64,000 nucleotides of DNA from Guillardia theta CCMP2712 (GCF_000315625.1 NW_005434523.1:14394-78393), one strand, 5' to 3'. Positions 26,385 to 63,473 are shown, numbered from the stretch's first letter. Notes: generated by a model not told the origin, from the sequence alone. Program-made: numbers and translations.

Positions 26385-27450
26385 CTAGCTCTCCCTCGCG
26401 TACTTCACGCTTACCCCCCTCCCCTCCCCGCCCCCCACGATCTCCTCCGGCGTCTCCCACCCTACCATCGGCAGACTCTCCTCGCTCCAATCGTCCTCCT
26501 CCCATGCCTCTGATGCGACCCAAAGCCTCCACTTCTCCGCCTGCTCCTCCTGCTGGTCCGCGTCGTCGTCAAGGCAGAGGGCCCATGCCCCCCGCTTACA
26601 CTGCGCCTTGTGCTGCTCGCGCGACTCGCCGGGTATCATCGTGAGGTCCGTGACCGTCTCCGACAGCTCTTGTTGGTCCGAGTCCTCGGGCGGCTCCCCG
26701 CCAGCACCCCACGCCTGACGTCCTCCCGTCTTGTCGGTCTCGCTGCCCCCCGACAGCGACGAGCACGTTGGCAACCATGGCGTCGCGTCATGCGGGGACG
26801 AGCAGAGGTCGTCATAGTCTGCTGGCTTAGTAGCGGCTGGGGCCTGCCTCTTGCTGCTGCGCTTCTTCCGGTACACCCGACGCGGCGCCTTGCTCCAGTT
26901 GGTCGTGATCTCCGCCCACGCCCGGTACCTCTCCCGGCAGCACTGCTCCAGCGCCTCCAGGCTCACGTCCGCCCCGAGCATCCACGCGAGCTGGCGGAGC
27001 TTGAGCCAGGCCTGCCGGAGCTCCTGGAGCTCGTGGGGGTCGTCGGGGTTCCTCCAGCGGCGGTTGGAGAAGAAGTAGCGCGCGCTGCCGCTCCTTGACA
27101 AGTCCGTCGCCTCCACCTTGTCGGGGAGGATGCAGCGGTCGCGGATCTTGGTGAAGCCGTTGTGCTCGAGGACCTTGTTGAACTCCACCTCCCTCACACC
27201 GTATTCTCCCATGACTTGGCTGTGCGAGCGGACGGCAGGCGGGATGCAGTCGCGGAGGGCGTCGTACATGGAGAGGCGGCCCTTGCGGGGGATGAAGAAG
27301 TGGCTGAGAGAAGGGACGGCGCGGGAGACCTGGGGCAGACAGGAGTCAGGCATGGGCAGGAGGAGGAGACAGGGAGAGGGAGGGGCATACCGCTTGGGCG
27401 AAGGCGAGGGCGACGGTCTTGGAGGCGGGGGAGGCAGAGGGCCGAACCAT
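26385..27450 (-). CDS. Putative winged-helix family, copy 1 (most divergent); intron 27330-27390
   Basis: Exon 1 MVRPSASPASKTVALAFAQA, phase-0 GTATG...CAG intron, conserved core, own acidic tail with GWETPEE. Confidence 0.85.
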
Positions 27451-27629
27451 TGTGCAGGATGGCAAAAGGAAGCTGGTTACGGAATGAAGTAACTCGTGAG
27501 GGTGTGTAGTAAAAACGGAACAGAACGGAAGGGTGCGGGAATGGGTCGATTGGTGGCCGCGAGTAACGTGACAGAGGCAGATTCAAGTAAAGAGCGATAT
27601 TTTCAGAAAAATAAATTCTGGTCATCGCC

Positions 27630-27651
27630 GAGATGCCGATGGTAACGTGAC
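27630..27651 (-). promoter_or_regulatory. 22-bp X-box-like motif upstream of copy 1
   Basis: GAGATGCCGATGGTAACGTGAC on +, 180 bp upstream of the ATG. A half copy (GTAACGTGACAGAGGCAG) lies at 27563. Confidence 0.7.
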
Positions 27652-28525
27652 AGAGGCAGAACGTCCAGTACACCCACCCCCTCCAGAGGCAGTACACCCT
27701 CCTTCATGTACCCCCCTTGAAAGCCTCCACCCCCCCTCAGACCTAGACCTGCCCTCTATCCGAGTCAGACCCAGGCTCCACTTGAAGCTCTTTAGGCCCG
27801 GAGGCTCCTGGTAGACTTGGATGTGTCGGAGTGGCTGATTATCGGTCCGGGCCCTTCGGCCGCCGCCCGGGACTCGCCCGGCCCGGGGACCGTTGGGCTG
27901 ACGAGTGCAAGACTGAGGTCGAATGACGAGTCATCCGATGATCAGTATCAGGACCCGCATCGGAACATCGACCACTTGAAACATGATCTCATCTTGCATG
28001 CCTGACAATATCAGAATCAGGCAAGAAGTATTCACACTATCCTTCCATGTCATGAGCATCCGCCATCACCGCCGCCGCGCTTTGCACTCTGCGGCTTCTC
28101 GAGTCAGTCGGAATCTTGAACTCATGCTGTGGGCATAACTTCACACAAGAGATGAAATGTTTGTGTAAAACTTCAATGTTAGAGATCTATGTTCATCGAC
28201 ATGAACACAGATAGTAGCTTCAAACTCTTCTCGAAAGGTAAGGACTCGGACCTCTACTCACCCCATCCGGCTCCGAGTCTTCGAGGACCCAACTTCAGAT
28301 GGGAATGGACACCCGACCCACATTCAAGTTGGACGGCAGGGACTTCACGATGCTCAATACAAGCAGCCGGAGGGCTCAAGACTGAATCGGGTCCACGAAG
28401 CCTCTCGTGTGTTATGACTGACTCTAGGCCCTGATTAAAGTGTTGTTGACTAGCGATGCGGGTACTGCTCCTTACTGCTTGAGCAACCTCTGGAGTGAAA
28501 TCAGCCGTACTGAGCAGATCTTAAC

Positions 28526-28778
28526 TAACTAGTCATTTTATTGTCACCCTCGCAGTCTACTCGTCTTGACTAGTTCTTTTCTTGTCACCATTGCTGTCTG
28601 TCTTGACTAGTTCTGTTCTTGTCACCATTGCTGTCTGTGTTGACTAGTTGTTTTCTTGTCACCATTGCTGTCTGTGTTGACTAGTTGTTTTCTTGTCACC
28701 ATTGCTGTCTGTGTTGACTAGTTGTTTTCTTGTCACCATTGCTGTCTGTGTTGACTAGTTCTTTTCTTGTTACCCTCG
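28526..28778. repeat. 37-bp minisatellite, about 6.5 copies
   Basis: TTGACTAGTT(G/C)TTTTCTTGTCACCATTGCTGTCTGTG at 28566, 28603, 28640, 28677, 28714 and 28751. Confidence 0.9.
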
Positions 28779-32460: not shown

Positions 32461-35400
32461 TGTAGGGAATCATCCCTCACGTCCTCGAGGTAGGAAGGGG
32501 GCGAGTCTCGCGGGTCATTTTGCCTGCGGGAGCCCGGCGCTTGTCGCGAGCCGGGGCTTGAAGCATGCAAGCAAGCGGGGCAGGCTGCAGAGGGTAGACA
32601 GAAGAAGGGGAAAGGGCGGGAAATGCATTTTTGTGCTGCTCACACAAAGCCCCTCCCTGCACGAGCTTGACGATCAGCCTCGTCCTTGGAGGCGGACTGC
32701 TTCGGCCTCTTCCCTCCAATGGCAAGGTGACTTATTTTCCCCATGACAAGAGCTCAAGAGACGGCGAGAAATCAACAGCACGACCATCATCCATGACACG
32801 ACGATACATGTAAAACACAAGACAAGACAAGTCGAGACATGAAGCATCGAGGGTCATACACCACGACAAGATGCCCAAGCATACGTGCAGGACACCATTG
32901 TAACGTGACAGAGTACAAGACCTCAACCCATGGCAAAGAGCAGAGGACACTATTCCAGTCTATCTTCCGCAGCAGCGACATACACAAGTCACCAGGAACG
33001 GAAGCAGGCAGGCAGGGAAGAAGAGGGGAGCAAGCAACTGGTCCAAGGGAGGGGTATGGTACCCAACCTCGTCCTCCTAGGCGAGGGCAGCTCCGTTGAT
33101 CTGTCCCCGTCGGTCCCTCTGGTGGTTGTGATCCGATGACAAGCCATGGGGATGAGAGTTTCAAGAGTGAAGCTTTGTCTCAACGAGAAGGTACTAAGGC
33201 GAGGGAAAACAGCAACCGAGATGTAGAGAAGCACAGAGACAGGAAAGGCCTATTTGTAATCATCCCACCACAGACGTGAGGGTGAGACATCAGGTCCCTC
33301 TGGACGCATGAGAGCTACTTCGTAAAAAAAACTGTTGAACAATCGGGGTCAAACATTCCGATCGTAACGTGACGGTCATTCTCAGAGCCTGCATGTGTGT
33401 GACCTGCTGACTGAACATCGCCGATCGCAACGTGATAGGAATGTCATGTCCCGCGAAGGAAGCATTGAAAGACTGACGAGCTGACGTTCATAGTGAGGAT
33501 CAATACTTCTAGTCTACCTTGAAACGACGGTGCGGATCTTGAGATGCCGATAGTAACGTGACCATAACTTCACAACGCAAACAAAAAGAGACAAGTCAGC
33601 AACCTAACGACAAGCTTGCGGACAGCTTCGCGACTCCCCTGGTCGACAAGTCGAAACATGGTCTTTCGTCCTCCTCTCTCCAACTCCTTGAGCTACCCAG
33701 GGGGTAGCTAAACTTGCAGCCATCGCAGGACACGAGGTTTATTTGCAATACAGCGTCAATCATGCTTGGTGGTGTCTTTGTTCTTGAAGGATAACGGAAG
33801 AGGAAATATAGAGATACCGTGAACAAACAGACATCAAGCATGCGAGCTTGCTTAGAATCAGAATCAAGTTTTGCAGGCGAAAACAACATAGAGAGCCAGC
33901 GGAGGAGGGGGAAAGGTCAGGGTCGAAGATCCAAGACCGACACGGAGAGGTAATGAGCCAGACTGCCATCTTGCTCAATCTCTGTCACGCTGTCACGTTG
34001 ATCAGGTTAACTTTATACTGAAACTCTTCAGTTCATCAAGGACACTGTGCTGTTGGCTGATGTTTTTCTTGACCGCAGCCCATCGATCAAGCTGTACAAA
34101 GCAGTTTTGGAGAGCAGGTCAGGAAACATGCACATGCTGTGCTGCGATGCTAGAGCACAACATTAGCAGGGCATCTTACTACAGCTCGCTGGGATCCCCT
34201 ACAGCAGCCGGCTCAGTGCAGCCAAGGCTGCCAGGCCAGACAAGGCTAGCTCGTCAGCCTGTCCAGCCTTGAGCGTGGCTCGAGGCCTGAGGGCTGCTGC
34301 AAGGTCGATTGCACGACGAGGTTGTCCGATGCCTGTGGCTCGCGATGGTGGGGTAGGGAAGGCGGTATGGAAGTGGAGACCATGAGACGTCGGCAAGCCA
34401 GCGCGGAGACTTTGAGGCAGAGGAGAAGGCTTCAAGCGACATACAAGTACCGATCATCGCCCCGAGCTTGTAGCCATATATGCCTAGAGAGCCTGCTCGC
34501 AGCCCTCATCTCACAAGGAGAGGCGGGATGCTTGCTGACCAGCTCCCGGCGCTTGAGAGAGGCATGATGAGGTACCACACAGCTCATTGACTGCTCATAG
34601 TTGACGATCACGTTACCATCGGCATTGGAAGTAAACTATGGTCTCGGATCTCATCAGGTCCGATGTGAGGGACGATCACGTTACCATCGGCATGGTTGAG
34701 TCAGCAGGTCACTGAGCCGGAGGTCGAGGAGAGCTGGAAGGGACGAGGATAGCGGTCACGGCATACTGAAGCGACCGTCAAGCCCGCGGCACGTTACGAT
34801 CGGCATCTGAGATCACGTTACCGTCGGCATGTTTGTCGCCAATATTGCCAGTGGTCTTTTTTCGACACTGGAGGGGGTGGTGCTTTCATGCTCCAGGAGG
34901 TAGGGGTAGGCTCAGATCGGAGGGGAACGACGGGGACAGATCAATGGAGCTGCCCTCGCCTAGGAGGACGAGGTTGGGTACCATACCCCTCCCTTGGACC
35001 AGTTGCTTGCTCCCCTCTTCTTCCCTGCCTGCCTGCTTCCGTTCCTGGTGACTTGTGTATGTCGCTGCTGCGGAAGATAGACTGGAATGGTGTCCTCTGC
35101 TCTTTGCCATGGGTTGAGGTCTTGTACTCTGTCACGTTACAATGGTGTCCTGCACGTATGCTTGGGCATCTTGTCGCGGTGTATGACCCTCGATGCTTCA
35201 TGTCTCGACTTGTCTTGTCTCGACTTGTCTTGTCTTGTGTTTTACATGTATTGTCGTGTCATGGATTATTGCCCATGGCGACGGGACACGTGCGTTTCGC
35301 CCCTCGGGCGAATCTGGCTTGCCTTCGCTTTCCAGACTGTGCATACGTAGAGCCATGCATCGATATCCGGCAGCAGCAACGATGTTTGGTGACGTACACA

Positions 35401-37970
35401 GCTCTGATTGGTGTGGCGATGTCATTCTAGAACGAGCAAGGATCAGGATCTCAGACACAAGACCGGACGCACAAGACGAGCCAAAGAGAGGAGCGAGAAG
35501 ACCACAAGCCAACACAAGCAGGCGAAGGCCAGGGTCTGAAGATGCACTCTAGGGTAGGACAATGCAGGAAAACGACATGACGCAAGCTTGCTGGTAGAGG
35601 CAACAGACCTACGCAAGATCCTCGCTCAGCTGCCGTCTCCGTCCCTCTTCGGCATGCTCTGACGGTAGCGCTGAGACGTCAGGCCTGAAGGGGTTAAGTT
35701 TATTAAAGTTAACCTGATCATCCTTCTTTCTCAAAGGCTCTCGAGCGCACGAGGACTAAGAGGCAGAGATGAAGCTTGTTCAGACAGCAACCTCATCTCC
35801 AATCCGACCATGTAGCAAACTTGGATTTCTCCAAGTCTTGACGAGAGAAAGTTTTCCAAGCGATGTCACGTTGATGCCATATGAACAGCACCTTTGTTTA
35901 TTGATAAGAGATTGAGCAAGATGGCAGTCTGGCTCATTACCTCTCCGTGTCGGTCTTGGATCTTCGATCCTGACCTTTCCCCCTCCTCCGCTGGCTCTCT
36001 ATGTTGTTTTTCCGTGCAAAACTTGATTCTGATTCTAAGCAAGCTCGCATGCTTGATGTCTGTTTGTTCACGGTATCTCTATATTTCCTCTTCCGTTATC
36101 CTTCAAGAACAAAGACACCACCAAGCATGATTGACGCTGTATTGCAAATAAACCTCGTGTCCTGCGATGGCTGCAAGTTTAGCTACCCCCTGGGTAGCTC
36201 AAGGAGTTGGAGAGAGGAGGACGAAAGACCATGTTTCGACTTGTCGACCAGGGGAGTCGCGAAGCTGTCCGCAAGCTTGTCGTTAGGTTGCTGACTTGTC
36301 TCTTTTTGTTTGCGTTGTGAAGTTATGGTCACGTTACTATCGGCATCTCAAGATCCGAACCGTCGCTTCAAGGTTGACATTCCTATCACGTTGCGATCGG
36401 CGATGTTGAGTCAGCAGGTCACACACATGCAGGGTCTGAGAATGACCGTCACGTTACGATCGGAATGTTTGACCCCCATTATTCAACAGTTGTTTTTCGA
36501 AGCGGCTCTCATGCGTCCAGAGGGACCTGATGTCTCACCCTCCCGTCTTTGGTGGGATGATTACAAATAGGCCTTTCCTGTCTCTGTGCTTCTCTACATC
36601 TTGTTTGCTGTTTTCCCTCGCCTTAGTACCTTCTCGTTGAGACAAAGCTTCACTCTTGAAACTCTCATCCCCATGGCTTGTCATCGGATCACAACCACCA
36701 GAGGGACCGACGGGGACAGATCAACGGAGCTGCCCTCGCCTAGGAGGACGAGGTTGGGTACCATACCCCTCCCTTGGACCAGTTGCTTGCTCCCCTCTTC
36801 TTCCCTGCCTGCCTGCTTCCGTTCCTGGTGACTTGTGTATGTCGCTGCTGCGGAAGATAGACTGGAATAGTGTCCTGCACGTATGCTTGGGCATCTTGTC
36901 GCGGTGTATGGCCCTCGATGCTTCATGTCTCGACTTGTCTTGTCTTGTGTTTTACATGTATCGTCGTGTCATGGATGATGGTCGAGAGGTGTTGCAGTCT
37001 GCTTGTCGCTGTCATGGCGTCTTGTGGCATGCTCTGCACTTGTTGTTTCTTCGCCCACGGTTCATCATCGGCACTTGCGCTGTTGGCTGCTGTCTTGCTT
37101 GACCGCAGCCCATCGATCAAGCTGTACAAAGCAGCTTTGGAGAGCAGGTCAGAGAACATGTACAAGCTGTGCTGCCATGCCGCTGGGACATGAAGCTCTT
37201 GGCTTAGCACGTGCACTAGGCATATGCGGTATGGTCGACAGCAAGTCTGTCGAGCTTTGCAAGTAAACCTCACACATCCTACCCTTCCCTTGTGTACCGC
37301 CCAGTGCACGCCCTCTCCCCTCCTTCTGTCTACCCTCTGCAGCCTGCCCCGCTTGCTTGCATGCTTCAAGCCCCGGCTCGCGACAAGCGCCGGGCTCCAG
37401 CAGGCAAAGCAACCCGCGAGGCTCGCTCCCTTCCTACCTCGAGGACGTGAGGGATGATCCCCCACAGCAGCCGGCTCAGTGCAGCCACAGACAAGGCTAG
37501 CTCGTCAGCCTGTCCAGCCTTGAGCGTGGCTCGAGGCCTGAGAAAGCACGACGAGGTTGTCCGATGCCTGTGGCTCGTCGCTGGACACTCGGAGGCGGAC
37601 TCGGCACGACCTTACAGGCGTGGTGTAGCGTAGCACAAGGCCTGGGCCTGACGCTCCTCTGCTCGTGGCCTGCGTGTGCCCATCACGTGACCATCAAGCT
37701 CGCGATGGTGGGGTAGGGAAAGGCGGTATGGAAGAGGAGGTTTGGATCAGCAGGCAGAGGGAGTGGAGGCGATGGCTGCAGGTAGCGATGCTGACGATGA
37801 GACGTCGGCAAGCCAGCGCGGAGACTTTGAGGCAGAGGAGAAGGCTTCCAGCGACATACAAGTACCGATCATCGCCCCGAACTTGTAGCCATATATGCCT
37901 AGAGAGCCTGCTCGCAGCCCTCATCTCACAAGGAGAGGCGGGATGCTTGCTGACCAGCTCACGGCGCTTG
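32461..37970. repeat. Mosaic of inverted and direct segmental repeats rich in the 22-bp motif
   Basis: 32461-32610 is inverted to 37316-37466, and ~32782-33982 is inverted to ~35908-36983. A third partial copy lies at ~34925-35263. ~34020-34556 is repeated directly in pieces at ~37075-37970. Confidence 0.85.
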
Positions 37971-38311
37971 ACAAACGAGTTGCTGACGCAAGCAATGTAT
38001 TCCAATGGTCTCAACAATGTCTCTAAAAGACGTCTGGTAGTCCGCTACGTAAGCATCCTTGTCTTCTACAGTTGCGTTTATGTTGTATTCGTCTTCTTCT
38101 TTTTGTCTACTTGACTCTTTCTGCGTTGTCTCCTCCGCCACTCTGCGTCTCTTGAGATCTTGCTCTTTGCTCGTCCTCTTGTAGTCTGCTCTTCGTCTCT
38201 AGTCGTCTTGGATCAAGCTCTGGACTTCTACCCTTGTGAGTGCCCCGATGCTTTCGTCTGCTGACGCATCGGTCTTGCCTATCTCATCTTCATCTCCTCA
38301 GGTGACCTCTA

Positions 38312-38688
38312 CTTCGTGCCTGGTCATGACTCTTGCTCGTCTTCGTGCCTGGTCATAACTCTTGCTCGTCTTCGTGCCTGGTCATGACTCTTGCTCTTCT
38401 TCGTGCCTGGTCATGACTCTTGCTCGTCTTCGTGCCTCGTCATGACTCTTGCTCGTCTTCGTGCCTGGTCATGACTCTTGCTCGTCTTCGTGCCTGGTCA
38501 TGACTCTTGCTCGTCTTCGTGCCTGGTCATGACTCTTGCTCGTCTTCGTGCCTCGTCATGACTCTTGCTCGTCTTCGTGCCTCGTCATGACTCTTGCTCG
38601 TCTTCGTGCCTGGTCATGACTCTTGCTCGTCTTCGTGCCTGGTCATGACTCTTGCTCGTCTTCATGCCTGGTCATGACTCTTGCTCTT
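38312..38688 (+). repeat. 29-bp minisatellite, about 13 copies
   Basis: CTTCGTGCCT(G/C)GTCATGACTCTTGCTCGT. Confidence 0.95.
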
Positions 38689-41500
38689 CTCTCTTGAGCT
38701 TCTCGTCTTCATCTCGCTGTGCAGTAAATTCCAGACCAGGACAGGCCCTTTGCCAGCCTCGAAATAACCAGCCGTCAAGTAGAGCTTTGCTAGTAAGCTT
38801 CACATCCTACCCTTCCCCTGTGTACCCCCCATTGCAGGCTACCATGGGGGTTCTTGGCCATGATGGTGACTTGGGAAGGAGCGACAAGAGTAAAGGAGGG
38901 ACCGAGAAGTTGTATGAGGAGGTTTGGATCAGCAGGTAGAGGGAGCGTTTGCAATGGCTGTCAGTGCAGGTGTGGCAAGGATTGATTGTAGCTCGAGAGG
39001 TCGGAGAGAGGGGGCGAGAGATGACGAGGAGGGTTGTACAGCTGGACGAGAGCAGAGGGAGGCCGGAGAGCTAGTTCAAAGAGTAGGGAAGGATGATCGA
39101 CTCGAAGAGGAGATGACAGTGAGAAGGGTAGGGGAGGACTTACGATCAGACGGTGCCGGACTAGCGATGAGACTCGGAGGTCGAGGCGGTGAGCCTTGAA
39201 GCGGCATGGAGGTATTGATCAGCGCTCCTATCTCGTAGCCATCTGCACGCCTACTTGCGGCTCTAGTGCCTGGAGCGAGAGAGAAGGCGATAGACGTCAT
39301 GAAGTTTACCACGGGACGTGACAGCTTGCGGACTAGACTTGCGGTCGTGGTTGTCACGTTACCATCGGCATCTCAAGATCAAGGCTCTACGTCTCCCCCG
39401 GTAGTCTCGGAGTCTACCTCCGTGTAAGGCGGTCAGAAGCTCTTCTGTGCCGCCCTGAGGCGTTGGCAGGCTTCAAGCAGACCCGCTCCTCTCTCCCCCA
39501 GTCGCGAGGGGACATGCAAGCGATGACACAACCCCCCCCACCTGACCTGACAAAATCTTACGTCAGAAGAGAGCAGGGATAATGGACCTGATGTTTGCTC
39601 CGGCTGATCATGTTACCGTCGGCATTGTTGAGTCAGCAGGTAGCAGAGACGGAAACCTTGCCGGTCATAGGCAACGCATTGGACAACAAGTTACCAACCG
39701 ACTGTCGTACCGGTGGTCACGTGATCAGACTTGAGTGGCGATCACGTTACGATCGGGATGTAGTCCACGTTACCATTGGCATCGACTGAAGAAGTCCGGC
39801 TGTCAGACATCAGGGCTATACAGAGGGGTCCCTTGGAGAGGAAACTTGAGTCAGCAGGATTGGGGTGGGTGGGCAGAGAGGGCGATTGGACGGTGAAGAA
39901 TTGGGAGGGTTGAAGGAGCCTGGAAGCTCATCGAAGAGACGATCGTCGTTTGTGCGAGGCGGACCTTTGTCGGGCAATTTTGACTGATCACGTGGCCATC
40001 GGCTTTTCTGAGTCAATCATCACGTGACCATCGGCTTTTCTGAGATAGTGGTCACGTTACCATCGGCATCTGAAGTAGATCTGAGAGATGTTGAGTCAGC
40101 AGGTCACTCTGTTGATGGTTGTCACGCGAGGTCTGAGGACCGTGGAACAACCGGCTCAAGGCTTTTCGTCTTGTCATCATCGGTCCCTTGGACTCCACGT
40201 GATGCGAGATTTGACGTCAGGCTCATCTTGGAACAAACAAGGACGAGGAGAGTGAACTTGGGATCCGTTGCATACCATCGTTCACGGTCGCGAGGCTAGA
40301 CGTTTTACAGCAAGAATTTTTCTGCGACATCCAATCTTGAAGCACTGGCATTCTGAAGTGGAAGCAACAGTTCATCCAACTCTCCCTGTAACTTTGCAGA
40401 ACCCGAAAGAAATTTTTCACTTTGTAACTCGGGATGACTGTCCAGGCTTCGAAACAAAGAATCCAAAACAAAATCGCCGAAATCAAATGTTGTCTTCAGA
40501 AAAATCGAATCACGAATCCGAATCAGGCGTAATAATCTGAGAACAAAGAGAAAATTTTCTCTTTGCAATCGAATCACTCCCCACCTCACTGGCCAGATAC
40601 TATTCAGTCCAAAGATCTCCCGCAACACTGAGCCCAAGTACACCTTAGATTCTCACACCACACGAGTAGCTCTCCAACCACTCAGATGTACAACCTTGCA
40701 ACACTCAAAGTTGGACTCACAGATCGGTCGGTCAACAACACCAATGCTTTTTTTGTCCACAGCAACTTCCTCCCCTTCACTCCCTTGCGTCCACCCTCAA
40801 TGCACACCCCGCGCTCCACGTGTCCTCTTACCTTTCCCTCCACTGATGAGAAACGTTCCCCTGAACTTGTCATCGTCTTCAAGAGGTTATCCGGGTTTTT
40901 ACAATAACCTCTCTTGAGTTGCAAAACTTCTTGAACTTGGTGAAGTATTGTTGTTTCTCGAGTTCGACATTCTTTCTCACAAAGGGCAGTAGAAGCAGCG
41001 TAAGGTGTGAAGAAGCAGAAGCACAAGACAAAGGTCATTGATCGGTGCAGTACAAGAGCTCGGGCTTGTAGCACGAGGAAAGCAAGGAGAGGTAGCTCAT
41101 TCACTGCAGTAGCTGGTTAACTGTTGGCTGCCGACTAAGACTGGTCACCTTCAAGCCGCCGACAATGAGTTGACAGTAAGTTCAGTATCAAACACATTCC
41201 TTGACTCTGCGTAAACCAGGCAAACCAGATTAGCATGCAAACGCTAGTCTCCTGGGACTTGCCCTCGTTGCATCCTGACGATAAGAGGAAACCTGTGTAG
41301 AAAAAGAGTAAACGATGCAGTGGCAACAAATGTGATTGACTAGTGCTACTGCTACTGCTGCTACTAGCTTGACGATGGTTGCAAACACGCCAAACCATGC
41401 AAGCGTAAATCATCAATCATTCATTAAATTGTGTAAAACAATGCAGAGCAGCAAGTAAGCTATACCCCACCAAGCTCTGTTAAATGAAAACCTGCCAGCT

Positions 41501-42625
41501 TCAGGCACTCCCGCGCTCTCCTCCGCTCCATACCGCCCTCCCTAGGCCCGTCGACTCCTCCGGCGTCTCCCACCACCCTTCAAACGCAAGCTCCTCCTCC
41601 TGCCAGCTCTCCTCCTCCTCCCTCGCCTCGCCAAGCAGGTGAAGCTCCCACGGCTCTGACTGGATGGACGCGACATCATTCTGAACAGGTAGAAAGCTCC
41701 CAGCCTCTCGATTCTCCTCCTCCCCCGACGACCAAAATGATGGCTCCCTACTGCCATAAGGTCCCTCAATCCCGGTCTCCTCCTGCATCCTCTCCTTCCC
41801 TCTCCCCCACAGCCGGGCACACAAGCTAGCCTCGGACCTCTTGTCCTCGACCATGATGCCTTGCACTGCCCCCGCCTCCTCCAGAGACTCAGCGGCCTCC
41901 TCTCCCGACGACCAGGTTGCAGGCGACCATGCCTCTTCGGCCCTGCTCTCGCTTGCAACACCCGCAGCATTCATCATCGTACCCTCCATCCCCTGCTTGC
42001 ACTCCTCTCCCGCGCCTCTCCCTCCCTTCATCCCCGTCCTCGCCTTCCGGTACACCCGACGCGGCGCCTTGCTCCAGTTCACCGTCATCTCCGCCCACGC
42101 CCCGTACCTCTCCCGGCAGCACTGCTCCAGCGCCTCCAGGCTCACGTCCGCCCCGAGCCTGCACGCGAGCTGGCGGAGCTTGAGCCAGGCCTGCCGGAGC
42201 TCCTGGAGCTCGTGGGGGTCGTCGGGGTTCCTCCAGCGGCGGTTGGAGAAGAAGTAGCGCGCGCTGCTGCTCCTCGAGAAGTCCGTCGCCTCGACATCGT
42301 CGGGGAGGATGCAGCGGTCGCGGATCTTGGTGAAGCCGTTGTGCTCGAGGACCTTGTTGAACTCCACCTCCCTCACCCCGTACCCCCCGAACGTCTGCTC
42401 CGCGCTACGGGCGGCGGCCGGGATGCAGTCGCGGAGGGCGTCGTAGAGGGAGAGGCGGCCTTTGCGGGGGATGAAGAGGTGGCTGAGGGAGGCAGGGACG
42501 GCTCGGGAGACCTGAGAGCAGGGGTGAGGTCTGAGCAGGAGATGAGAGGAGGGGGAGGAGCATACCGCTTGGGCGAAGGCGAGGGCGACGGCCTTGGAGG
42601 CGGGGGAGGCAGAAGGCCGGACCAT
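41501..42625 (-). CDS. Putative winged-helix family, copy 2; intron 42512-42565
   Basis: Same two-exon structure and core, intact frame, longest acidic tail. Confidence 0.85.
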   Translation of the reverse strand: MVRPSASPASKAVALAFAQAVCSSPSSHLLLRPHPCSQVSRAVPASLSHLFIPRKGRLSLYDALRDCIPAAARSAEQTFGGYGVREVEFNKVLEHNGFTKIRDRCILPDDVEATDFSRSSSARYFFSNRRWRNPDDPHELQELRQAWLKLRQLACRLGADVSLEALEQCCRERYGAWAEMTVNWSKAPRRVYRKARTGMKGGRGAGEECKQGMEGTMMNAAGVASESRAEEAWSPATWSSGEEAAESLEEAGAVQGIMVEDKRSEASLCARLWGRGKERMQEETGIEGPYGSREPSFWSSGEEENREAGSFLPVQNDVASIQSEPWELHLLGEAREEEESWQEEELAFEGWWETPEESTGLGRAVWSGGERGSA

Positions 42626-43017: not shown

Positions 43018-43039
43018 GAGATGCCGATGGTAACGTGAC
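43018..43039 (-). promoter_or_regulatory. 22-bp X-box-like motif upstream of copy 2
   Basis: Exact GAGATGCCGATGGTAACGTGAC. Confidence 0.7.
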
Positions 43040-48300: not shown

Positions 48301-48322
48301 GTCACGTTACCATCGGCATCTC
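48301..48322 (+). promoter_or_regulatory. 22-bp X-box-like motif upstream of copy 6
   Basis: Exact GTCACGTTACCATCGGCATCTC. A variant lies at 47870. Confidence 0.7.
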
Positions 48323-48663
48323 AAACGACGAAATTAAAAAATCTCATTGCGCGAAGCAGGGGTACCTGACAACTGAATCTAGGGGGTAGGGGTCTTGTAT
48401 CGGGGAAAGTTGCAATGGGGGAATGACGAGCCCTGAGGACCGGTACTAAGGGGAGCATGCGTCAGACCCTGTACCACTCTATCCTCCCTTCCCCTCCCTT
48501 TCCCCCCCTCTCACCCTCCCCTCCATAACCCATACCCTCTGATCTCTTCATCAACTGATTCCCTTCTCTGCCTCACCGAATCTCTTTCAAGCAGCCCGCC
48601 CTCTCCATCACGACATATCATCACTAGCGAAATCCCCGTGCCTCCTACATAATCCTTCCTCCC

Positions 48664-49577
48664 ATGGTCCGGCCCTCTGCCTCCCCCGCCTCCAAGGCCG
48701 TCGCCCTCGCCTTCGCCCAAGCGGTATGCCCCTCCCCCTCATCTCATCTCCTCCCTCTTTCCTCTGCTCTAACCCTTCCCCTCCCCCCTCCAGGTCTCCC
48801 GAGCCGTCCCTGCCTCCTTCAGCCACCTCTTCATCCCCCGCAAGGGCCGCCTCTCCCTCTACGACGCCCTCCGCGACTGCATCCCGGCCGCCGCCCGTAG
48901 CGCGGAGCAGACGTTCGGGGGGTACGGGGTGAGGGAGGTGGAGTTCAACAAGGTCCTCGAACACAACGGCTTCACCAAGATCCGCGACCGCTGCATCCTC
49001 CCCGACGAGGTGGAGGCGACGGACTTCTCGAGGAGCAGCAGCGCGCGCTACTTCTTCTCCAACCGCCGCTGGAGGAACCCCGACGACCCCCACGAGCTCC
49101 AGGAGCTCCGGCAGGCCTGGCTCAAGCTCCGCCAGCTCGCGTGCAGGCTCGGGGCGGACGTGAGCCTGGAGGCGCTGGAGCAGTGCTGCCGGGAGAGGTA
49201 CGGGGCGTGGGCGGAGATGACGGTGAACTGGAGCAAGGCGCCGCGTCGGGTGTACCGGAAAGGCGAGGACGGGGAGGAAGGGAGGGAGGGGCAAGGGGCA
49301 GGAGGGGAGAGGGAAGGAGAGGATGGAGGAGACCGGGGCTGAGGGACCTGCTGGTAGCGGGCAGAATCGAGAGGCTGGGAGCTTTCTACCTGTTCAGAAT
49401 GATGTCGCGTCCGTCCAGTCAGAGCCGTGGGAGCTTCACCTGCTTGGCGAGGCGAGGGAGGAGGAGGAGAGCTGGCTGGAGGAGGAGCTTACGTTTGTAG
49501 GGTGGTGGGAGACGCCGGAGGAGGTGACGGGCTTAGGGAGGACGGGCTGCCATGTATGGCGCGAAGGAGGATGGTGA
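48664..49577 (+). pseudogene. Family copy 6, +1 frameshift at ~49260; intron 48724-48793
   Basis: CGGAAAGGCG versus CGGAAGGCG in copy 5. Confidence 0.7.
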
Positions 49578-50491
49578 TGGGTTTGGGGTGAGGGACGTTC
49601 TGCAAGAGGTATCGGAGGTCTTGTAGATAGGTCACGAGGGGCTCGGGGATGATGGCGAAACAAATAGACGTAAAGTGGTGTTAACATGAGAACAATAATT
49701 TGATGATTAAATTGATAGATGTTTCCATTGCACCTCAGCGTTCCTGGAGGTCTTTGCAGATACCTCAAAAGCTCCATCCTGAGCGTGATCTCCCACCAAG
49801 AGCAGTTGAGAGAGACATTTGTTCTGTGATTGGAGGCAAACAATTCCTACACCGTCACGCCAACTTGCGGATACATCAATCGACAACGGTCAACCTCTCT
49901 GTTCACATACGGACACAACGTTACAACCATGCCGTGGTGCATGCATCTAGCTAGTTGGCTACAAACTTCTTATGCAGTAGGAACCTTTCTTTTTTTTCGG
50001 AACCATCAATTCACTCCAACACCTTTCATTCAGTACTTGTGTCGACATGAGCTGACGCCAGTCACGTTACAGTCGGCATCACGATTTCGTTACAATGGAC
50101 CTCGGTCCGAGCAGTAAAACATCATTTATTATATGCATCGATTCGGAAGCACTATTCAAATCCAGTCTCGATGCATGAAGTACCTTAAATCCCACACTGA
50201 CTTCACCGCTTCCTCTTTCCGTTGCAGCCCATCATTTGCCTCTCTCTGACAACCACCCGACGGGGGCATCACAGAGATTGGCAGCTGAGCCTGATAAGGC
50301 AGCAAAGGTGACGAGAGCTGGACTGGCAGCTGGACTGGTGCGACGAGGAGGGTTGAGCGGTTTACTTTTTGAAAAGATGCCCGTGAGGCGGGCCCGGTTG
50401 TAGCACACCCCCCTCTTATAATTATTATTATCATTATTGTTCCGTTTCCGATGGACTAAAAAAGAATGAGGGGATCTGTAGTAAGTTGACG

Positions 50492-50513
50492 GTCACGTTA
50501 CCATCGGCATCTC
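50492..50513 (+). promoter_or_regulatory. 22-bp X-box-like motif upstream of copy 7
   Basis: Exact GTCACGTTACCATCGGCATCTC. A variant lies at 50061. Confidence 0.7.
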
Positions 50514-50858
50514 AAACGACGAAATTAAAAAATCTCATTGCGCGAAGCAGGGGTACCTGACAACTGAATCTAGGGGGTAGGGGTCTTGTATCGGGGAAAG
50601 TTGCAATGGGGGAATGACGAGCCCTGAGGACCGGTACTAAGGGGAGCATGCGTCAGACCCTGTACCACTCTATCCTCCCTTCCCCTCCCTTTCCCCCCCT
50701 GTGCAACTTTATAAAGTAAATAAAGGGCCTCGAGCCCGAACCCGCCTCCCTCCTCCTCCTCTCCCTCTTGCTTGACCTCCTCACCGTGCTTGCTGCATCG
50801 GTTGTCGTCCTCTAACCCAGATCTCAAGCACACAGCTGAAAACTCTGAATTCCCTGCC

Positions 50859-51816
50859 ATGGTTCGGCCCTCTGCCTCCCCCGCCTCCAAGGCCGTCGCC
50901 CTCGCCTTCGCACAAGCGGTATGCCCCTCCCCCTCATCTCATCTCCTCCCTCCTCTGGCCTGACCCCTGCTCTCAGGTCTCCCGAGCCGTCCCTGCCTCC
51001 TTCAGCCACCTCTTCATCCCCCGCAAGGGCCGCCTCTCCCTCTACGACGCCCTCTGTGACTGCATCCCGGCCGCCGCCCGTAGCGCGGAGCAGACGTTCG
51101 GGGGGTACGGGGTGAGGGAGGTGGAGTTCAACAAGGTCCTCGAGCACAACGGCTTCACCAAGATCCGCGACCGCTGCATCCTCCCCGACGAGGTGGAGGC
51201 GACGGACTTCTCGAGGAGCAGCAGCGCGCGCTACTTCTTCTCCAACCGCCGCTGGAGGAACCCCGACGACCCCCACGAGCTCCAGGAGCTCCGGCAGGCC
51301 TGGCTCAAGCTCCGCCAGCTCGCGTGGATGCTCGGGGCGGACGTGAGCCTGGAGGCGCTGGAGCAGTGCTGCCGGGAGAGGTACGGGGCGTGGGCGGAGA
51401 TGACGGTGAACTGGAGCAAGGCGCCGCGTCGGGTGTACCGGAAGGCGAGGACGGGGACGAGAGGGAGAGGCGCGGGAGAGGAGTGCAAGCAGGGGATGGA
51501 GGGTACGATGATGAATGCTGCGGGTGTTGCAAGCGAGAGCAAGGGCGTAGAGGCATGGTCTCCTGCAACCTGGTCGTCGGGAGTGGAGGCCGCGGAGTCT
51601 CTGGAGGGAGCGGGGGCAGTGCAAGGCATCATGGTCGAGGACATCAAGTCAGTGAAGTCAGAGCCGTGGGAGCTGAGCCTGCTTGGCGAGGCGAGGGAGG
51701 AGGAGGAGAGCTGGCTGGAGGAGGAGCTTCCGTTTGTAGGGTGGTTAGAGACGCCGGAGGAGGTGACGGGCCTAGGGAGGGCGGTATGGAGCGGAGGAGA
51801 GCGCGGGAGTGCTTGA
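50859..51816 (+). CDS. Putative winged-helix family, copy 7; intron 50919-50976
   Basis: Intact; the tail is an internally shortened version of the copy 2 tail. Confidence 0.85.
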
Positions 51817-54021
51817 AGCTGGAAGGTTTTCATTTAACAGAGCTTGGTGGGGTATAGCTTACTTGCTGCTCTGCATTGTTTTACACAATTTAATGAATGA
51901 TTGATGATTTACGCTTGCATGGTTTGGCGTGTTTGCAACCATCGTCAAGCTAGTAGCAGCAGTAGCAGTAGCACTAGTCAATCACATTTGTTGCCACTGC
52001 ATCGTTTACTCTTTTTCTACACAGGTTTCCTCTTATCGTCAGGATGCAAGGAGGGCAAGTCCCAGGAGACTGGCGTTTGCATGCTAATCTGGTTTGCCTG
52101 GTTTACGCAGAGTCAAGGAATGTGTTTGATACTGAACTTACTGTCAACTCATTGTCGGCGGCTTGAAGGTGACCAGTCTTAGTCGGCAGCCAACAGTTAA
52201 CCAGCTACTGCAGTGAATGAGCTACCTCTCCTTGCTTTCCTCGTTCTACAAGCCCGAGCTCTTGTACTGCACCGATCAAGGACCGCCCGTAGCGCGGAGC
52301 AGACGTACGGGGGGTACGGGGTGAGCGAGGTGGAGTTGACCTTGTTCTTGTGCTTCTGCTTCTTCACACCTTACGCTGCTTCTACTGACCTTTGTGAGAA
52401 AGAATGTCGAACTCGAGAAACAACAATACTTCACCAAGATTTCAATTCTCTCCTAACTACCTGTAATTGAATGCTCAAATCATCACAGTTGGAACCCATC
52501 TCGACAAGTCTGCTTGTCGGGAGCATCAAGGGGTGGAGGCCCGGCTTCAACTTCGACGACTGCAGGCATGCAAGAGACCAGCAGGATAAGTCTTCACAAC
52601 CGGCACGAGGAACTGGTCAACGACGGGACGAATGATGTCAGCAGCAGAGCTGTTGATCGCTTAGATCAGGCTCTTTCAAGAAGTCTTGCAACTCAAGAGA
52701 GCTTGTTTCAAGATTGCTTGTCCCAGAATAAAGCTTGCTTTAAACAGTCTAGCTTCGCGTCCTTGAACGATGGTATGCAACCGAACCCAAATTCTTGCTG
52801 CTCGTCCTTGTTTGTGCCAAGATGAGCTTGACGTCCAATCTCTCATCACGTGCAGGGCCGGCAGCCAAGTTGAGGACTAACTCAAGCGCCGATGGCCACG
52901 TTATCAGTCAAAATTGCCCGACAAAGGCCACGACAAGACGCGCACAGAAAGCCAGTCTGACCCTCCGCCTCGCACAATCGACGATCGTCTCTTCGATGAG
53001 CTTAAGATGCTGATGGTAACTTGTTGTCCCATGCGTTGCCTATGACCGGCAAGGTTTCCGTCTCTGCTACCTGCTGACTCAACAATGCCGACGGTAACAT
53101 GATCAGCCGGAGCAAACATGAGGTCCATTATCCCTGCTCTCTTCTCACGTAAGATTTGTCAGGTCAGGTGGGGGGGGTTGTGTCATCGCTTGCATGTCCC
53201 CCCGCGACTGGAGGAGAGAGGAGCGGGTCTGCTTGAAGCCTGCCAACGCCTCAGGGCGGCACAGAAGAGCTTCTGACCGCCTTACACGGAGGTAGACTCC
53301 GAGACTACCGGGGGAGACGTAGAGCCTTGATCTTGAGATGCCGATGGTAACGTGACAACCACGACCGCAAGTCTAGTCCGCAAGCTGTCACGTCCCGCAG
53401 AAAACTTTATGACGTCTATCGCCTTCTCTCTCGCTCCAGCCACTAGAGCCGCAAGTAGGCGTGCAGATGGCTACGAGATAGGAGCGCTGATCAATACCTC
53501 CATGCCGCTTCAAGGCTCACCGCCTCGACCTCCGAGTCTCATCGCTAGTCCGGCACCGTCTGATCGTAAGTCCTCCCCTACCCTTCTAACTGTCATCTCC
53601 TCTTCGAGTCGATCATCCTTCCCTACTCTTTGAACTAGCTCTCCGGCCTCCCTCTGCTCTCGTCCAGCTGTACAACCCTCCTCGTCATCTCTCGCCCCCT
53701 CTCTCCGACCTCTCGAGCTACAATCAATCCTTGCCACACCTGCACTGACAGCCATTGCAAACGCTCCCTCTACCTGCTGATCCAAACCTCCTCATACCAA
53801 CTTCTCGGTCCCTCCTATACACTTGTCGCTCCTTCCCAAGTCACCATCATGGCCAAGAACCCCCATGGTAGCCTGCAATGGGGGGTACACAGGGGAAGGG
53901 TAGGATGTGAAGCTTACTAGCAAAGCTCTACATGACGGCTGGTTATTTCGAGGCTGGCAAAGGGCCTGTCCTGGTCTGGAATTTACTGCACAGCGAGATG
54001 AAGACGAGAAGCTCAAGAGAG

Positions 54022-54544
54022 AAGAGCAAGAGTCATGACCAGGCATGAAGACGAGCAAGAGTCATGACCAGGCACGAAGACGAGCAAGAGTCATGACGAG
54101 GCACGAAGACGAGCAAGAGTCATGACCAGGCATGAAGACGAGCAAGAGTCATGACGAGGCACGAAGACGAGCAAGAGTCATGACCAGGCACGAAGACGAG
54201 CAAGAGTCATGACCAGGCACGAAGACGAGCAAGAGTCATGACGAGGCACGAAGACGAGCAAGAGTCATGACGAGGCACGAAGACGAGCAAGAGTCATGAC
54301 CAGGCACGAAGACGAGCAAGAGTCATGACCAGGCACGAAGACGAGCAAGAGTCATGACGAGGCACGAAGACGAGCAAGAGTCATGACGAGGCACGAAGAC
54401 GAGCAAGAGTCATGACCAGGCACGAAGACGAGCAAGAGTCATGACCAGGCACGAAGACGAGCAAGAGTCATGACGAGGCACGAAGACGAGCAAGAGTCAT
54501 GACGAGGCACGAAGACGAGCAAGAGTCATGACGAGGCACGAAGA
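54022..54544 (-). repeat. 29-bp minisatellite, about 18 copies (inverted partner of 38312-38688)
   Basis: ACGAGCAAGAGTCATGAC(C/G)AGGCACGAAG. Confidence 0.95.
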
Positions 54545-60341: not shown

Positions 60342-61265
60342 TCAAGCCCATCCCCATCCGTCGCTCCACACAGAGCAGACCGTCCTCCCTAAGCCCGTCA
60401 CCTCCTCCGGCGTCTCCCACCATCCTACCCGCGGGAGCTCTTCTTTCTCCAGCAAGCTCTCCTCCTCCTCCTCCCTCGCCTCGCCTGGGATGCTCAGATC
60501 GAAGGGCTCCTCCTTGACAGACATGACACCAGGCCAGACGCTGGACAAGCCATCGAATGCGATCTCATCCTCGTCGTGTGCCTCAACCGATCTTGTTTCT
60601 GACCCCTCCTCCACCCACGCCCCCTCCTTCCCAGAGACTTTCTTCCCTTCCAATCCATCCTTCTTGCCTGCCTTGTGCTTGTTGCGGTACACCCGACGCG
60701 GCGCCTTGCTCCAGTTCACCGTCATCTCCGCCCACGCCCCGTACCTCTCCCGGCAGCACTGCTCCAGCGCCTCCAGGCTCACGTCCGCCCCGAGCCTCCA
60801 CGCGAGCTGGCGGAGCTTGAGCCAGGCCTGCCGGAGCTCCTGGAGCTCGTGGGGGTCGTCGGGGTTCCTCCAGCGGCGGTTGGAGAAGAAGTAGCGCGCG
60901 CTGCTGCTCCTCGAGAAGTCCGTCGCCTCCACCTCGTCGGGGAGGATGCAGCGGTCGCGGATCTTGGTGAAGCCGTTGTGCTCGAGGACCTTGTTGAACT
61001 CCACCTCCCTCACCCCGTACCCCCCGAACGTCTGCTCCGCGCTACGGGCGGCGGCCGGGATGCAGTCGCAGAGGGCGTCGTACAGGGAGAGGCGGCCCTT
61101 GCGGGGGATGAAGAGGTGGCTGAGGGAGGCAGGGACGGCTCGGGAGACCTGAGAGTAGAGGTGAGGTCTGAGGAGGAAAGGGTCATGAGGAGAGGAGGGG
61201 CATACCGCTTGGGCGAAGGCGAGTGCGACGGCCTTGGAGGCGGGGGAGGCAGAGGGCCGGACCAT
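60342..61265 (-). CDS. Putative winged-helix family, copy 8; intron 61149-61205
   Basis: Intact two-exon gene with a further tail type. Confidence 0.85.
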   Translation of the reverse strand: MVRPSASPASKAVALAFAQAVCPSSPHDPFLLRPHLYSQVSRAVPASLSHLFIPRKGRLSLYDALCDCIPAAARSAEQTFGGYGVREVEFNKVLEHNGFTKIRDRCILPDEVEATDFSRSSSARYFFSNRRWRNPDDPHELQELRQAWLKLRQLAWRLGADVSLEALEQCCRERYGAWAEMTVNWSKAPRRVYRNKHKAGKKDGLEGKKVSGKEGAWVEEGSETRSVEAHDEDEIAFDGLSSVWPGVMSVKEEPFDLSIPGEAREEEEESLLEKEELPRVGWWETPEEVTGLGRTVCSVWSDGWGWA

Positions 61266-61551
61266 GGATGTATCGTACTGTGTGAGATGTGGGGGAAGTG
61301 CCAAGTGCTGTTGCAGGGCCAAGGGAGGTATGTGGGTACGGATACTACTTGAGGGAGAGGGAGAACACTTGGGGACACGCCAGGGAACGGGGAGAGTACA
61401 CCCCACCCCCATTCGCTTCCGCACCCGTTTTCCCCTCGAAAATAGACCGGTACTCCGCAAATACATTTTGATCTCCCACCCCCTAGATTGCCCTTGTTTT
61501 CACCCCTACTCGATGAGATTTCATAAAATTGCCTTTTAGGCACCGAAAATT

Positions 61552-61573
61552 AAGATTCCGATGGTAACGTGAC
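61552..61573 (-). promoter_or_regulatory. X-box-like motif upstream of copy 8 (between divergent copies 8 and 9)
   Basis: AAGATTCCGATGGTAACGTGAC followed by CGTCAACTTAC, as at 48290. Confidence 0.7.
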
Positions 61574-62550
61574 CGTCAACTTACAGTTCAGCAGTAAAGA
61601 AAAAAATAGTAATTTTTCTTTTTTCGGGATCTTCCTGGGTCAGTAATAAACGACTGTACACTGCCACCCCCCTTGCGGACACAATTTTCAGGGGTCCTTC
61701 CATGGGGAGCCTCCGACAATTTTGTGTGCGGAAGTTCACACGGAAAGTTCCGGGCTGGCCTCAGGCAGATACTATTATTTTATATCACTCTCTCCTGGAT
61801 CATCCGTTATCATTCCGTTATGATGGGCGCAGGGACCATTAGGTCCAATTGTGTGTGGTACTAATTTTTACTCAAGCGGCCCTGCAGATTTCAAGAACTT
61901 TCAGTGAATCTTCGTAAAAGTCTATTTTAGCTGAATCGCGCGATTGTGAAACGTTGAGTTTGAATATGATCGTGCAAGCCTCTATGTGAAGCCTCGGGTG
62001 GGGAGACGGGCACGAAAACTTATACCTCGAAAACCGGTCCGCCGGACCCGGGCGGTCACGGTGGCGACCGGAGGCGCCGAGGCTGGGAGGCCGCCGTGGA
62101 AAAGCTCACAATAGCAAAGTTAAACTTTAGTAAAGCCAGTTGCTGGTTGTATGAAGCTCTTTGAGGACTCAGAAAAAAAGGCAAAAACCGACCGGAGGGA
62201 GGAAAGTTTTTGGTTCAGATATAGCGCATGTTTTTTTCCTGTACTCCCGATCCGACGGAATCTCGAGAGCTCTTGGCGGTATCAATGACTGGGTGCATTA
62301 TACTCCGGCTGGTGCCGAACCTCGCCTTGCTGAAAGAAGTGGTACTCAGTCGACGAAACGGTGTGAGATCATTCGGCAATAAGCGTAAAAGTAGTTTTAG
62401 TTGTCAACTATAAGTCCTCCTTTGCCGTTCCCCCCTCTTCATCTCTCCTTCCCCGTCCATCCAAGCCATCAATCCCCTTCAACAGCAGATCAAGCCACCT
62501 CATTACTCTCCTCGCCCCTTGCTACCTCCCGTCGTTGAAGACATTCCACC

Positions 62551-63473
62551 ATGGTTCGGCCCTCTGCCTCCCCCGCCTCCAAGGCCGTCGCCCTCGCCTT
62601 CGCCCAAGCGGTATGCCCCTCGCCTCCTCTCCTCCTCTGCTCTGCTCTGACACCTGCTCCCTTCAGGTCTCCCGAGCCGTCCCTGCCTCCCTCAGCCACC
62701 TCTTCATCCCCCGCAAGGGCCGCCTCTCCCTCTACGACGCCCTCTGCGACTGCATCCCGGCCGCCGCCCGTAGCGCGGAGCAGACGTTCGGGGGGTACGG
62801 GGTGAGGGAGGTGGAGTTCAACAAGGTCCTCGAGCACAACGGCTTCACCAAGATCCGCGACCGCCGAGTCATCCCCGACGTCCTGGGGGAGACGGACTTC
62901 TCGAGGAGCAGCAGCGCGCGCTACTTCTTCTCCAACCGCCGCTGGAGGAACCCCGACGACCCCCACGAGCTCCAGGAGCTCCGGCAGGCCTGGCTCAAGC
63001 TCCGCCAGCTCGCGTGGAGGCTCGGGGCGGACGTGAGCCTGGAGGCGTTGGAGCAGTGCTGCCGGGAGAGGTACGGGGCGTGGGCGGAGATGACGGTGAA
63101 CTGGAGCAAGGCGCCGCGTCGGGTGTACCGCAACAAGCACAAGGCAGGCAAGAAGGATGGATTGGAAGGGAAGAAAGTCTCTGGGAAGGAGGGGGCGTGG
63201 GTTGAGGAGGGGTCAGAAACAAGATCGGTTGAGGCACACGACGAGGATGAGATCGCATTCGATGGCTTGTCCAGCGTCTGGCCTGGTGTCATGTCGGTCA
63301 AGGAGGAGCCCTTCGATCTGAGCATGCCAGGCGAGGCGAGGGAGGAGGAGGAGGAGAGCTTGCTGGAGAAAGAAGAGCTCCCGCGGGTAGGATGGTGGGA
63401 GACGCCGGAGGAGGTGACGGGCTTAGGGAGGACGGTCTGCTCTGTGTGGAGCGACGGATGGGGATGGGCGTGA
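62551..63473 (+). CDS. Putative winged-helix family, copy 9; intron 62611-62666
   Basis: Inverted near-identical partner of copy 8 (arms ~60176-61265 and 62551-63645). Confidence 0.85.

Follow-up and report, generated by a model that had tools for sequence, protein, structure and literature searches.

What are the nine similar genes that lie within one 64,000-nucleotide (nt) stretch of Guillardia theta CCMP2712 nuclear DNA, and why does the same 22-nt sequence recur upstream of most of them? The stretch (hereafter the window) is contig C151:14394-78393, taken from an assembly of 87 Mb in 669 contigs; positions are counted from its first letter. The best protein matches of the copies are GUITHDRAFT_119578-119588 of the same strain, all annotated as 'hypothetical protein'. 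We consider it moderately probable that the nine genes are local members of an undescribed, cryptophyte-restricted family of winged-helix proteins resembling RFX and Pox_D5, and that they encode DNA-binding regulators, are homogenized by gene conversion and are accompanied by a selected motif.

Nine copies of a two-exon gene

A tblastn search with one copy as query returned nine family copies in the window and one short relic. Exon 1 is 60 nt long in all nine and encodes MVRPSASPASKAVALAFAQA. It is followed by a phase 0 GT..AG intron (54-71 nt in the six copies measured), and exon 2 begins at VSRAVP. Some copies have stops inside the intron, and its length is not in every case divisible by three. 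The National Center for Biotechnology Information (NCBI) models P0001-P0006 are spliced identically to the structure deduced here. The copies, numbered c1 to c9, are as follows.

26385..27450, minus strand: c1 (GUITHDRAFT_119578); start codon 27450, exon 1 27391-27450, exon 2 from 27329; intact
41501..42625, minus strand: c2; start codon 42625, exon 2 from 42511; intact, acidic tail long
43420..44360, minus strand: c3 (GUITHDRAFT_119580); start 44360; truncated open reading frame (ORF) ends 43679; tail remnant in other frame
45168..46159, minus strand: c4; start 46159, exon 2 from 46028; intact
46481..47386, plus strand: c5; start 46481, exon 2 from 46604; N gap inside, tail intact
48664..49559, plus strand: c6 (GUITHDRAFT_119582); start 48664; truncated ORF ends 49342; tail remnant to 49559
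50859..51816, plus strand: c7; start 50859, exon 2 from 50977; intact
60342..61265, minus strand: c8 (GUITHDRAFT_119585, protein P0001); start 61265, exon 2 from 61148; intact; protein modelled
62551..63473, plus strand: c9 (GUITHDRAFT_119586); start 62551, exon 2 from 62667; intact

An earlier note on this DNA had described nine two-exon genes with a near-invariant domain, a basic PRRVYR and an acidic tail. The copies and their splicing stand, but the tail is lost to frameshifts in c3 and c6, leaving six intact copies (c1, c2, c4, c7, c8 and c9). Both frameshifted copies enter the same alternative frame and end at about 200 amino acids (aa). In c3 the shift falls directly after MTVNW, so that PRRVYR and the acidic tail are lost; in c6 it falls directly after PRRVYRK, with loss of the tail. 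Copy c5 contains a gap at 46814-46969 (156 N) that stands for exactly the 52 codons seen in c4 and c6, without disturbing the frame: exon 2 breaks off on the left after codon 70 (...CILP) and restarts on the right at codon 123 (VSLEAL...). Because the gap length is only an estimate, this agreement shows consistency, not continuity. The most divergent copy within the window is c1, and c8 and c9 are 98% identical across 820 nt.

Further pieces of the family lie close by. The relic, at 52285-52368 on the edge of an inverted-repeat arm, comprises 28 codons; they correspond to c8 ORF residues 140-167 (64% identity). A tenth copy, GUITHDRAFT_119588, lies ~6.4 kb past the window end on C151 (6411-7430 of a 10-kb stretch), with a core 93% identical. 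The unplaced contig C550 (3818 nt) carries two more near-identical copies, three upstream motifs (by the relaxed pattern given below) and an N gap of its own. This contig could be an allelic version of part of the cluster, or a collapsed part of it.

Predicted fold of the domain

Two AlphaFold models were built from independent alignments, the first from exon 2 only with 19 sequences (predicted local distance difference test, pLDDT, 80.7) and the second with exon 1 added and an 87-sequence alignment (pLDDT 84.2). In model 2, residues 1-116 form a winged helix that starts at Met1 and has the topology H1-S1-H2-H3-S2-wing-S3 (H8-21, E33-35, H42-49, H68-77, E81-85, wing, E105-113, where H is helix and E is strand), with exon 1 as helix 1. 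A signal-peptide reading of exon 1 is ruled out, since its pattern is conserved family-wide and it forms this helix. The winged helix is followed by a helical hairpin (~residues 119-165), then by a short basic stretch, PRRVYRK..., which may resemble a nuclear localization signal, and finally by a variable acidic C-terminal tail ending GWWETPEE-like.

An exhaustive VIA-align search of 48,161 Protein Data Bank (PDB) chains placed RFX proteins at the head of the matches to model 2. RFX5 ranked first (8zjr_M; Z 8.3, root-mean-square deviation (rmsd) 2.7, 80/82 residues) and RFX1 second (1dp7_P; Z 6.5, rmsd 2.8, 73/76 residues), and the next match stood at Z 5.5. The origin-binding domain of phage P4 (1ka8_A) was recovered at Z 5.0 over 77 residues, and nearly all of the top 50 matches were winged-helix domains. 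For model 1, RFX1 1dp7 came first (Z 4.3) and RFX5 8zjr second (Z 4.1), with the P4 domain fourth. All ten rows of an ESM Atlas shape search were Pox_D5, D5_N, DUF5906 or VapE (TM 0.49-0.57; 79-89 residues aligned). Foldseek against the PDB returned nothing at E<=0.001, RFX5 ranking second with probability 0.63, and an ESM Atlas feature search gave no usable match.

On these models, assignment of the domain to the winged helices is solid, and RFX is its probable, though not certain, nearest relative. The earlier note had reached an RFX-like fold by aligning the core by eye and had pointed to kinship with D5/P4-type winged helices. The fold call is borne out by structure only, through the first and second ranks of RFX5 and RFX1 with both models; the helices and strands of the model follow one another as the by-eye alignment implies, and the proposed kinship is reflected in the structural recovery of the P4 domain and of Pox_D5-type primase C-termini.

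Compared with RFX (PF02257; 1DP7, the RFX1-X-box structure, and 8ZJR, RFX5), the family has the winged-helix topology in common and a similar order of motifs, namely (A/P)R(S)..(L)(Y/F) at S1-H2, F.K.L in H3, and basic S2 and S3. However, it shows no hidden Markov model (HMM) or BLAST similarity to RFX, its domain begins at Met1, the wing of the window copies is long, variable and acidic, and the RFX accessory domains (dimerisation, B, C) are missing. A six-frame scan of the G. theta genome with RFX_DNA_binding (PF02257) gave two sub-threshold matches, both at unrelated loci, and no canonical RFX. RFX-type winged helices are considered exclusive to opisthokonts and amoebozoans; a EukProt-wide survey found stray cases beyond these groups in three taxa only, with no cryptophyte among them (PMC10530576), whereas the family described here occurs in cryptophytes.

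Compared with Pox_D5 and the phage P4 alpha protein (PF03288; 1KA8), the fold is the same by the ESM Atlas rows and the P4 match. The family members, in contrast, are stand-alone eukaryotic proteins encoded by intron-bearing genes, in which the domain starts at Met1 without any other Pfam domain, whereas the Pox_D5/P4 domain lies C-terminally in primase-helicases or VapE proteins. Pox_D5 (PF03288) had no match among the proteins or in the genome. Comparison of a family alignment (A2) with the P4 domain by hhalign, the latter as a single sequence, gave a probability of 0.4%; relatives of that domain in IMG/VR were all 93-100% identical, too little diversity for an hhalign profile.

A large family in cryptophytes

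The family has far more members in the genome than the nine window copies that the earlier note had noticed. We found 70 matching stretches at ~40 loci in G. theta, with identity down to ~26%, and tandem or inverted pairs were common. A profile from 19 members retrieved 534 clusters at E<=1e-3 and 213 at E<=1e-10 from 1.84 billion representatives clustered at 50% identity. The 20 clusters sampled for names contained only unnamed metagenome proteins or cryptophytes, and named homologues came from Guillardia, Hanusia phi, three Rhodomonas and Baffinella. Many homologues are transcripts from MMETSP; thus, family members are transcribed. The N-terminus M(V/G/P)RP.AS.EN(K)..AL.FA..V(T) is kept across the family, and the intron position is common to paralogues at ~35% identity.

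Full-length members include proteins of 200-560 aa and ten of 465-920 aa, and no Pfam domain was found in any of them, those ten included. Even at E<=10, Pfam had no match for four window copies or for 87 family members, and searches of the copies and these members against Pfam, PHROGs and PDB sequences gave no meaningful match. A tblastn search of the domain against phages produced only two chance matches, one of them antisense to an annotated gene. In a profile search with a full-length alignment (A3), common words drowned out the signal, and the yield was 12 cryptophyte proteins, all already known. The family is large, undescribed and unannotated in databases, and every named member is cryptophyte.

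A comparable case is ApiAP2 of apicomplexans, a lineage-specific expansion of transcription factors in protists for which DNA binding and target motifs are experimentally established. In both families, one fold has been amplified to dozens of paralogues in one protist lineage, with variable low-complexity tails and no other recognizable domain. They differ in that DNA binding by the cryptophyte family is a prediction.

A motif upstream of the gene copies

The 22-mer GTCACGTTACCATCGGCATCTC, which we call the M motif, has 15 matches in the window at <=3 mismatches, compared with 0 in 100 shuffles. As the earlier note had stated, seven copies (c1-c4 and c6-c8) carry it upstream in gene orientation, here at 180-393 nt, and each of c5 and c9 has its site in common with its divergent partner (c4 and c8, respectively). 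In pairwise blastn of 700-nt upstream regions, it was the sole significant shared segment (c1, c2, c3, c4, c6/7 and c8). The sites near the genes are the following.

27630..27651, minus strand: exact M motif, 180 nt upstream of the c1 ATG
43018..43039, minus strand: exact M motif, 393 nt upstream of c2
44556..44577, minus strand: exact M motif, 196 nt upstream of c3
46365..46386, minus strand: M motif with 2 mismatches in the 322-nt c4/c5 divergent spacer, 206 nt upstream of c4; 95 nt from c5, in reverse orientation relative to c5
47870..47891, plus strand: degenerate M motif with 3 mismatches, 431 nt upstream of the c6 motif; duplicate at 50061-50082
48301..48322, plus strand: exact M motif, 342 nt upstream of c6
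50492..50513, plus strand: exact M motif, 346 nt upstream of c7
61552..61573, minus strand: M motif with 2 mismatches, 287 nt upstream of c8; common to divergent c9

Genome-wide, the 18-mer of the M motif at <=1 mismatch has 18 matches, all in this cluster or on C550. The relaxed pattern CACGNTACNNTCGGNATC has 22 matches (0 for a control), of which 18 are in the cluster or C550; 14 fall at most ~800 nt 5' of a family gene and have the same orientation as that gene. Outside the cluster, variants stand 73 and 144 nt upstream of an inverted pair of paralogues on C45 (~54% identity to c8), where they are retained despite large indels on either side. The variant CTCAGCAGTCACGTTACTCTCGGCATCAT at C49:202023 and C106:80516 forms a 29-nt island in otherwise different flanks. 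The C106 site is ~440 nt from the start of a divergent gene with a Zn2Cys6-like CxxC...C motif, and a related ORF is present on C49. Upstream of one Baffinella and one Tara homologue, the motif was absent.

Because the M motif is the sole conserved upstream island and recurs at the C45 pair, selection most likely maintains (T)CACGTTACCATCGGCAT(C), an element of 18-22 nt, as a cis-regulatory site associated with this subfamily. Candidates for its binder are a family member or another factor, for example, a basic leucine zipper (bZIP) or basic helix-loop-helix (bHLH) protein reading the ACGT core, and we favor neither. Two other identities for the motif can be set aside. With 22 relaxed-pattern matches in 87 Mb it is not a generic promoter element, the finding that the earlier note had named as fatal to its proposal; nor is it coding sequence or a known RNA, since no ORF runs across the arrays and Rfam gave no match.

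Approximately 14 further copies, missed by the earlier note, lie in the window away from family genes.

33354..33562, minus strand: two M motifs with an AP-1-like co-motif, in an inverted-repeat arm; no adjacent family gene
34609..34831, plus strand: four M motifs in one orientation, TGAGTCAGCAGGT at 34697; no adjacent family gene
36328..36467, plus strand: two M motifs; inverted-duplicate partner of 33354-33562
39353..40072, plus strand: seven M motifs or variants; 32-nt tandem unit at 39987-40067; interleaved TGAGTCAGCAGG co-motifs
53006..53356, minus strand: three M motifs; inverted-duplicate partner of part of 39353-39630

These arrays often adjoin TGAGTCAGCAGGT, an AP-1/GCN4-like site. 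The co-motif TGAGTCAGCAGG(T), with a perfect AP-1/GCN4-type TGAGTCA inside, stands beside M motifs at 33402 (minus strand), 34697, 39629, 39847 and 40092. The 18-mer GTTGAGTCAGCAGGTCAC at <=1 mismatch has seven genome matches, four of them in this cluster.

Cluster architecture and probable gene conversion

The cluster formed by tandem and inverted duplication. Copies c2-c4 (minus strand) and c5-c7 (plus strand) belong to a palindromic block, 38307..54403, whose arms (38307-39554 and 53155-54403) are complementary at 98-99% and whose center lies near 46.4 kb, beside the N gap. The block is bracketed by two 29-nt tandem arrays in inverted orientation (38312-38690 and 54020-54548; 13 and 18 copies; 97% matches). 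Within it, c6 and c7 have identical flanks, as parts of a 2191-nt tandem unit. A second inverted repeat, 32944-33983 / 35907-36876 (98-99% complementary), has M motifs in both arms and the four-copy array (34609-34831) at its center, with no family gene inside.

Conservation between copies is a mosaic. The upstream 300 nt are 47-53% identical against a shuffled baseline of 48%, so that the surrounding DNA does mostly differ, as had been claimed, with the 22-mer its only significant shared segment. Identity is 95-100% in exon 1, 62-83% in the intron and 89-99% in the first 480 nt of exon 2, and it drops to 47-64% in the tails, except for the c8/c9 pair (99%). Downstream DNA is at baseline, recent duplicate pairs excepted. 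The synonymous divergence (dS) between c1 and the other copies is just 0.13-0.16, too low for point divergence to account for the unalignable flanks. A cassette of ~600 nt (exon 1 plus the domain core) thus appears to have been homogenized at 89-100% identity among old paralogues, while flanks, most of the intron and tails are unalignable. The simplest reading of this pattern is that gene conversion probably keeps the cassette uniform. A transposon-borne gene is ruled out by flanks at the shuffled baseline. Between diverged subfamily members, the ratio of nonsynonymous to synonymous divergence (dN/dS) is 0.17-0.39.

Proposed DNA binding and alternative explanations

Basic residues are conserved in 86-100% of the 87 members at positions R36, R55, 63, K73, K/R82, R84, R86, R112 and R114. 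About ten conserved Arg/Lys are concentrated in helix 3, the wing base and strands 2 and 3; R84, R86, R112 and R114, where these strands meet the wing, are invariant. From these residues, from nearest folds that are DNA-binding domains, and from a basic stretch followed by an acidic tail, an arrangement that would be typical of activators, we infer that the family is a lineage-specific expansion of nuclear DNA-binding regulators.

Several observations weigh against this reading. No sequence method detected a link to RFX, Pox_D5 or any DNA-binding family, and Z 8.3 is a level that the search tool rates as middling. The wing loop (residues 87-104) is variable in length, has a pLDDT of ~52 and is acidic in the window copies; in RFX1, a basic, conserved wing W1 reportedly reads the major groove of the X-box half-site. 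Helix 3 carries conserved acidic residues (E68, E70 and E76) and a single invariant basic one. Cullin WHB and ESCRT-II winged helices, which are protein-interaction modules, are among the matches at Z ~5. The M motif is absent at <=4 mismatches near the tenth copy (at <=3 mismatches, from the whole 10-kb stretch of C151 that holds it) and near copies on C102, C110, C71 and C109, and 18 distant paralogues yielded only one weak reverse-strand match at <=5 mismatches. Essentially no RNA reads fell on c8/c9 in ~6% of the sole raw RNA run, the remaining sequencing runs being genomic or matching only pieces of 18-23 nt. Furthermore, part of the cluster may be decaying, given dN/dS of 0.5-1.0 among near-identical local copies and two frameshifted genes.

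The full model of the earlier note goes further than ours: the 22-mer would serve RFX-type factors as an X-box, and these factors would activate their own genes through the acidic tail. Binding would then probably be by dimers, on the imperfect dyad GTTACC-ATC-GGCATC. RFX domains are indeed the best structural matches, and motif and gene occur together in at least seven independent sequence contexts, scaffold C45 included. The M motif is also one mismatch from the X-box GTNRCC-N0-3-RGYAAC, a match equaled by 0.44% of random window 22-mers. This much of the claimed X-box likeness stands, but the conservation profile is unlike that of two 6-bp half-sites. Across ~25 instances, TCACGTTAC and TCGG.AT are invariant, and hardly any change is seen at T11 and C12, which an X-box would place in its spacer. 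Variation is greatest at positions 9 and 18, where the two putative half-sites would end, and conservation, which includes a 5' TCAC and the ACGT core, continues 5' of the X-box. We therefore treat 'X-box-like' as a lead only. The model also has to contend with a wing that is not conserved, with the lack of the motif at most paralogues, and with motifs that stand beside unrelated Zn2Cys6-like genes or in arrays that hold no gene and have an AP-1-like site. We regard it as unlikely overall, while granting it a real chance.

It is distinctly unlikely that the M motifs have no function and are left over from a short local repeat or micro-element that was spread by cluster rearrangements, with their position upstream of genes a by-product. 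Such an origin would fit a region rich in inverted and tandem duplications, the confinement of 18 of the 22 relaxed-pattern matches to the cluster or to C550, which is apparently part of it, and the occurrence of the motif in arrays and in a 32-nt tandem unit. It fits poorly with a motif whose orientation always follows the gene and that stands as single copies in otherwise unrelated flanks. Persistence of a variant at the C45 paralogues despite large indels, and the 29-nt island in differing flanks on C49 and C106, likewise count against such an origin.

A similarly low probability attaches to a winged helix that acts by contacting protein or RNA and does not recognize specific DNA sequences. 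Among the matches at Z 4-6 are indeed winged helices of cullin WHB, ESCRT-II, La-motif and Pol III subunit type, and the acidic character of helix 3 is as this explanation would have it. However, the two best matches and the entire Atlas list are DNA-binding domains, the conserved Arg/Lys cluster lies on strands 2/3, the wing base and helix 3, and the basic stretch and acidic tail would again suit an activator.

Very improbable is an origin of the genes as relics or passengers of a viral or selfish element, that is, a detached D5/P4-type domain with iteron-like arrays marking former replication or recombination sites: the Atlas rows are mostly phage or viral, the P4 domain matches structurally, and the short ori repeats that the P4 record annotates in clusters (in ori and crr) resemble the same-orientation M-motif arrays, but no primase or helicase lies nearby, the genome is without a Pox_D5 match, the intron position is common to ~35%-identity paralogues, the flanks are not conserved as for a mobile unit, and the genes show purifying selection, with hundreds of diverged members transcribed in several cryptophyte genera.

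Implications for cryptophyte gene regulation

We return to a cryptophyte family of candidate winged-helix regulators. With dozens of members per genome, hundreds of clusters, named members that are all cryptophyte and an RFX/Pox_D5-like predicted fold, it stands out as a strong candidate for the principal family of regulators specific to the cryptophytes, a group whose gene regulation is, to our knowledge, almost unexplored. The family would be a second data point on the recruitment of this fold from, or its sharing with, viral primases. The homogenized cassette within unalignable flanks would offer a clean case for exon-restricted gene conversion, and the pairing of gene and motif gives a concrete in vitro test: a recombinant fragment of residues 1-175 against the 18-22-mer.

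A bolder proposal, unlikely when taken in full, is that cryptophytes independently built a major transcription factor family from an RFX/D5-primase-type winged helix, in parallel to the origin of RFX in opisthokonts and amoebozoans. Members of one subfamily would bind TCACGTTACCATCGGCAT, singly in their own promoters and also in iteron-like arrays, and the cluster would be self-regulating and gene-converted.

Other features of the window

Between c7 and c8, at 56187-59034, lies the remnant of a long terminal repeat (LTR) retrotransposon, with a weak gag match, RVT_1 (E 9e-16) and RT_RNaseH (E 2e-26). Its domains are in different frames, so the element is probably broken. A 37-nt tandem repeat of 5.6 copies occupies 28566-28774, and a long (AGGAG)n / Ser-Leu-rich low-complexity stretch at 30298-31519 gives rise to spurious long ORFs on both strands.

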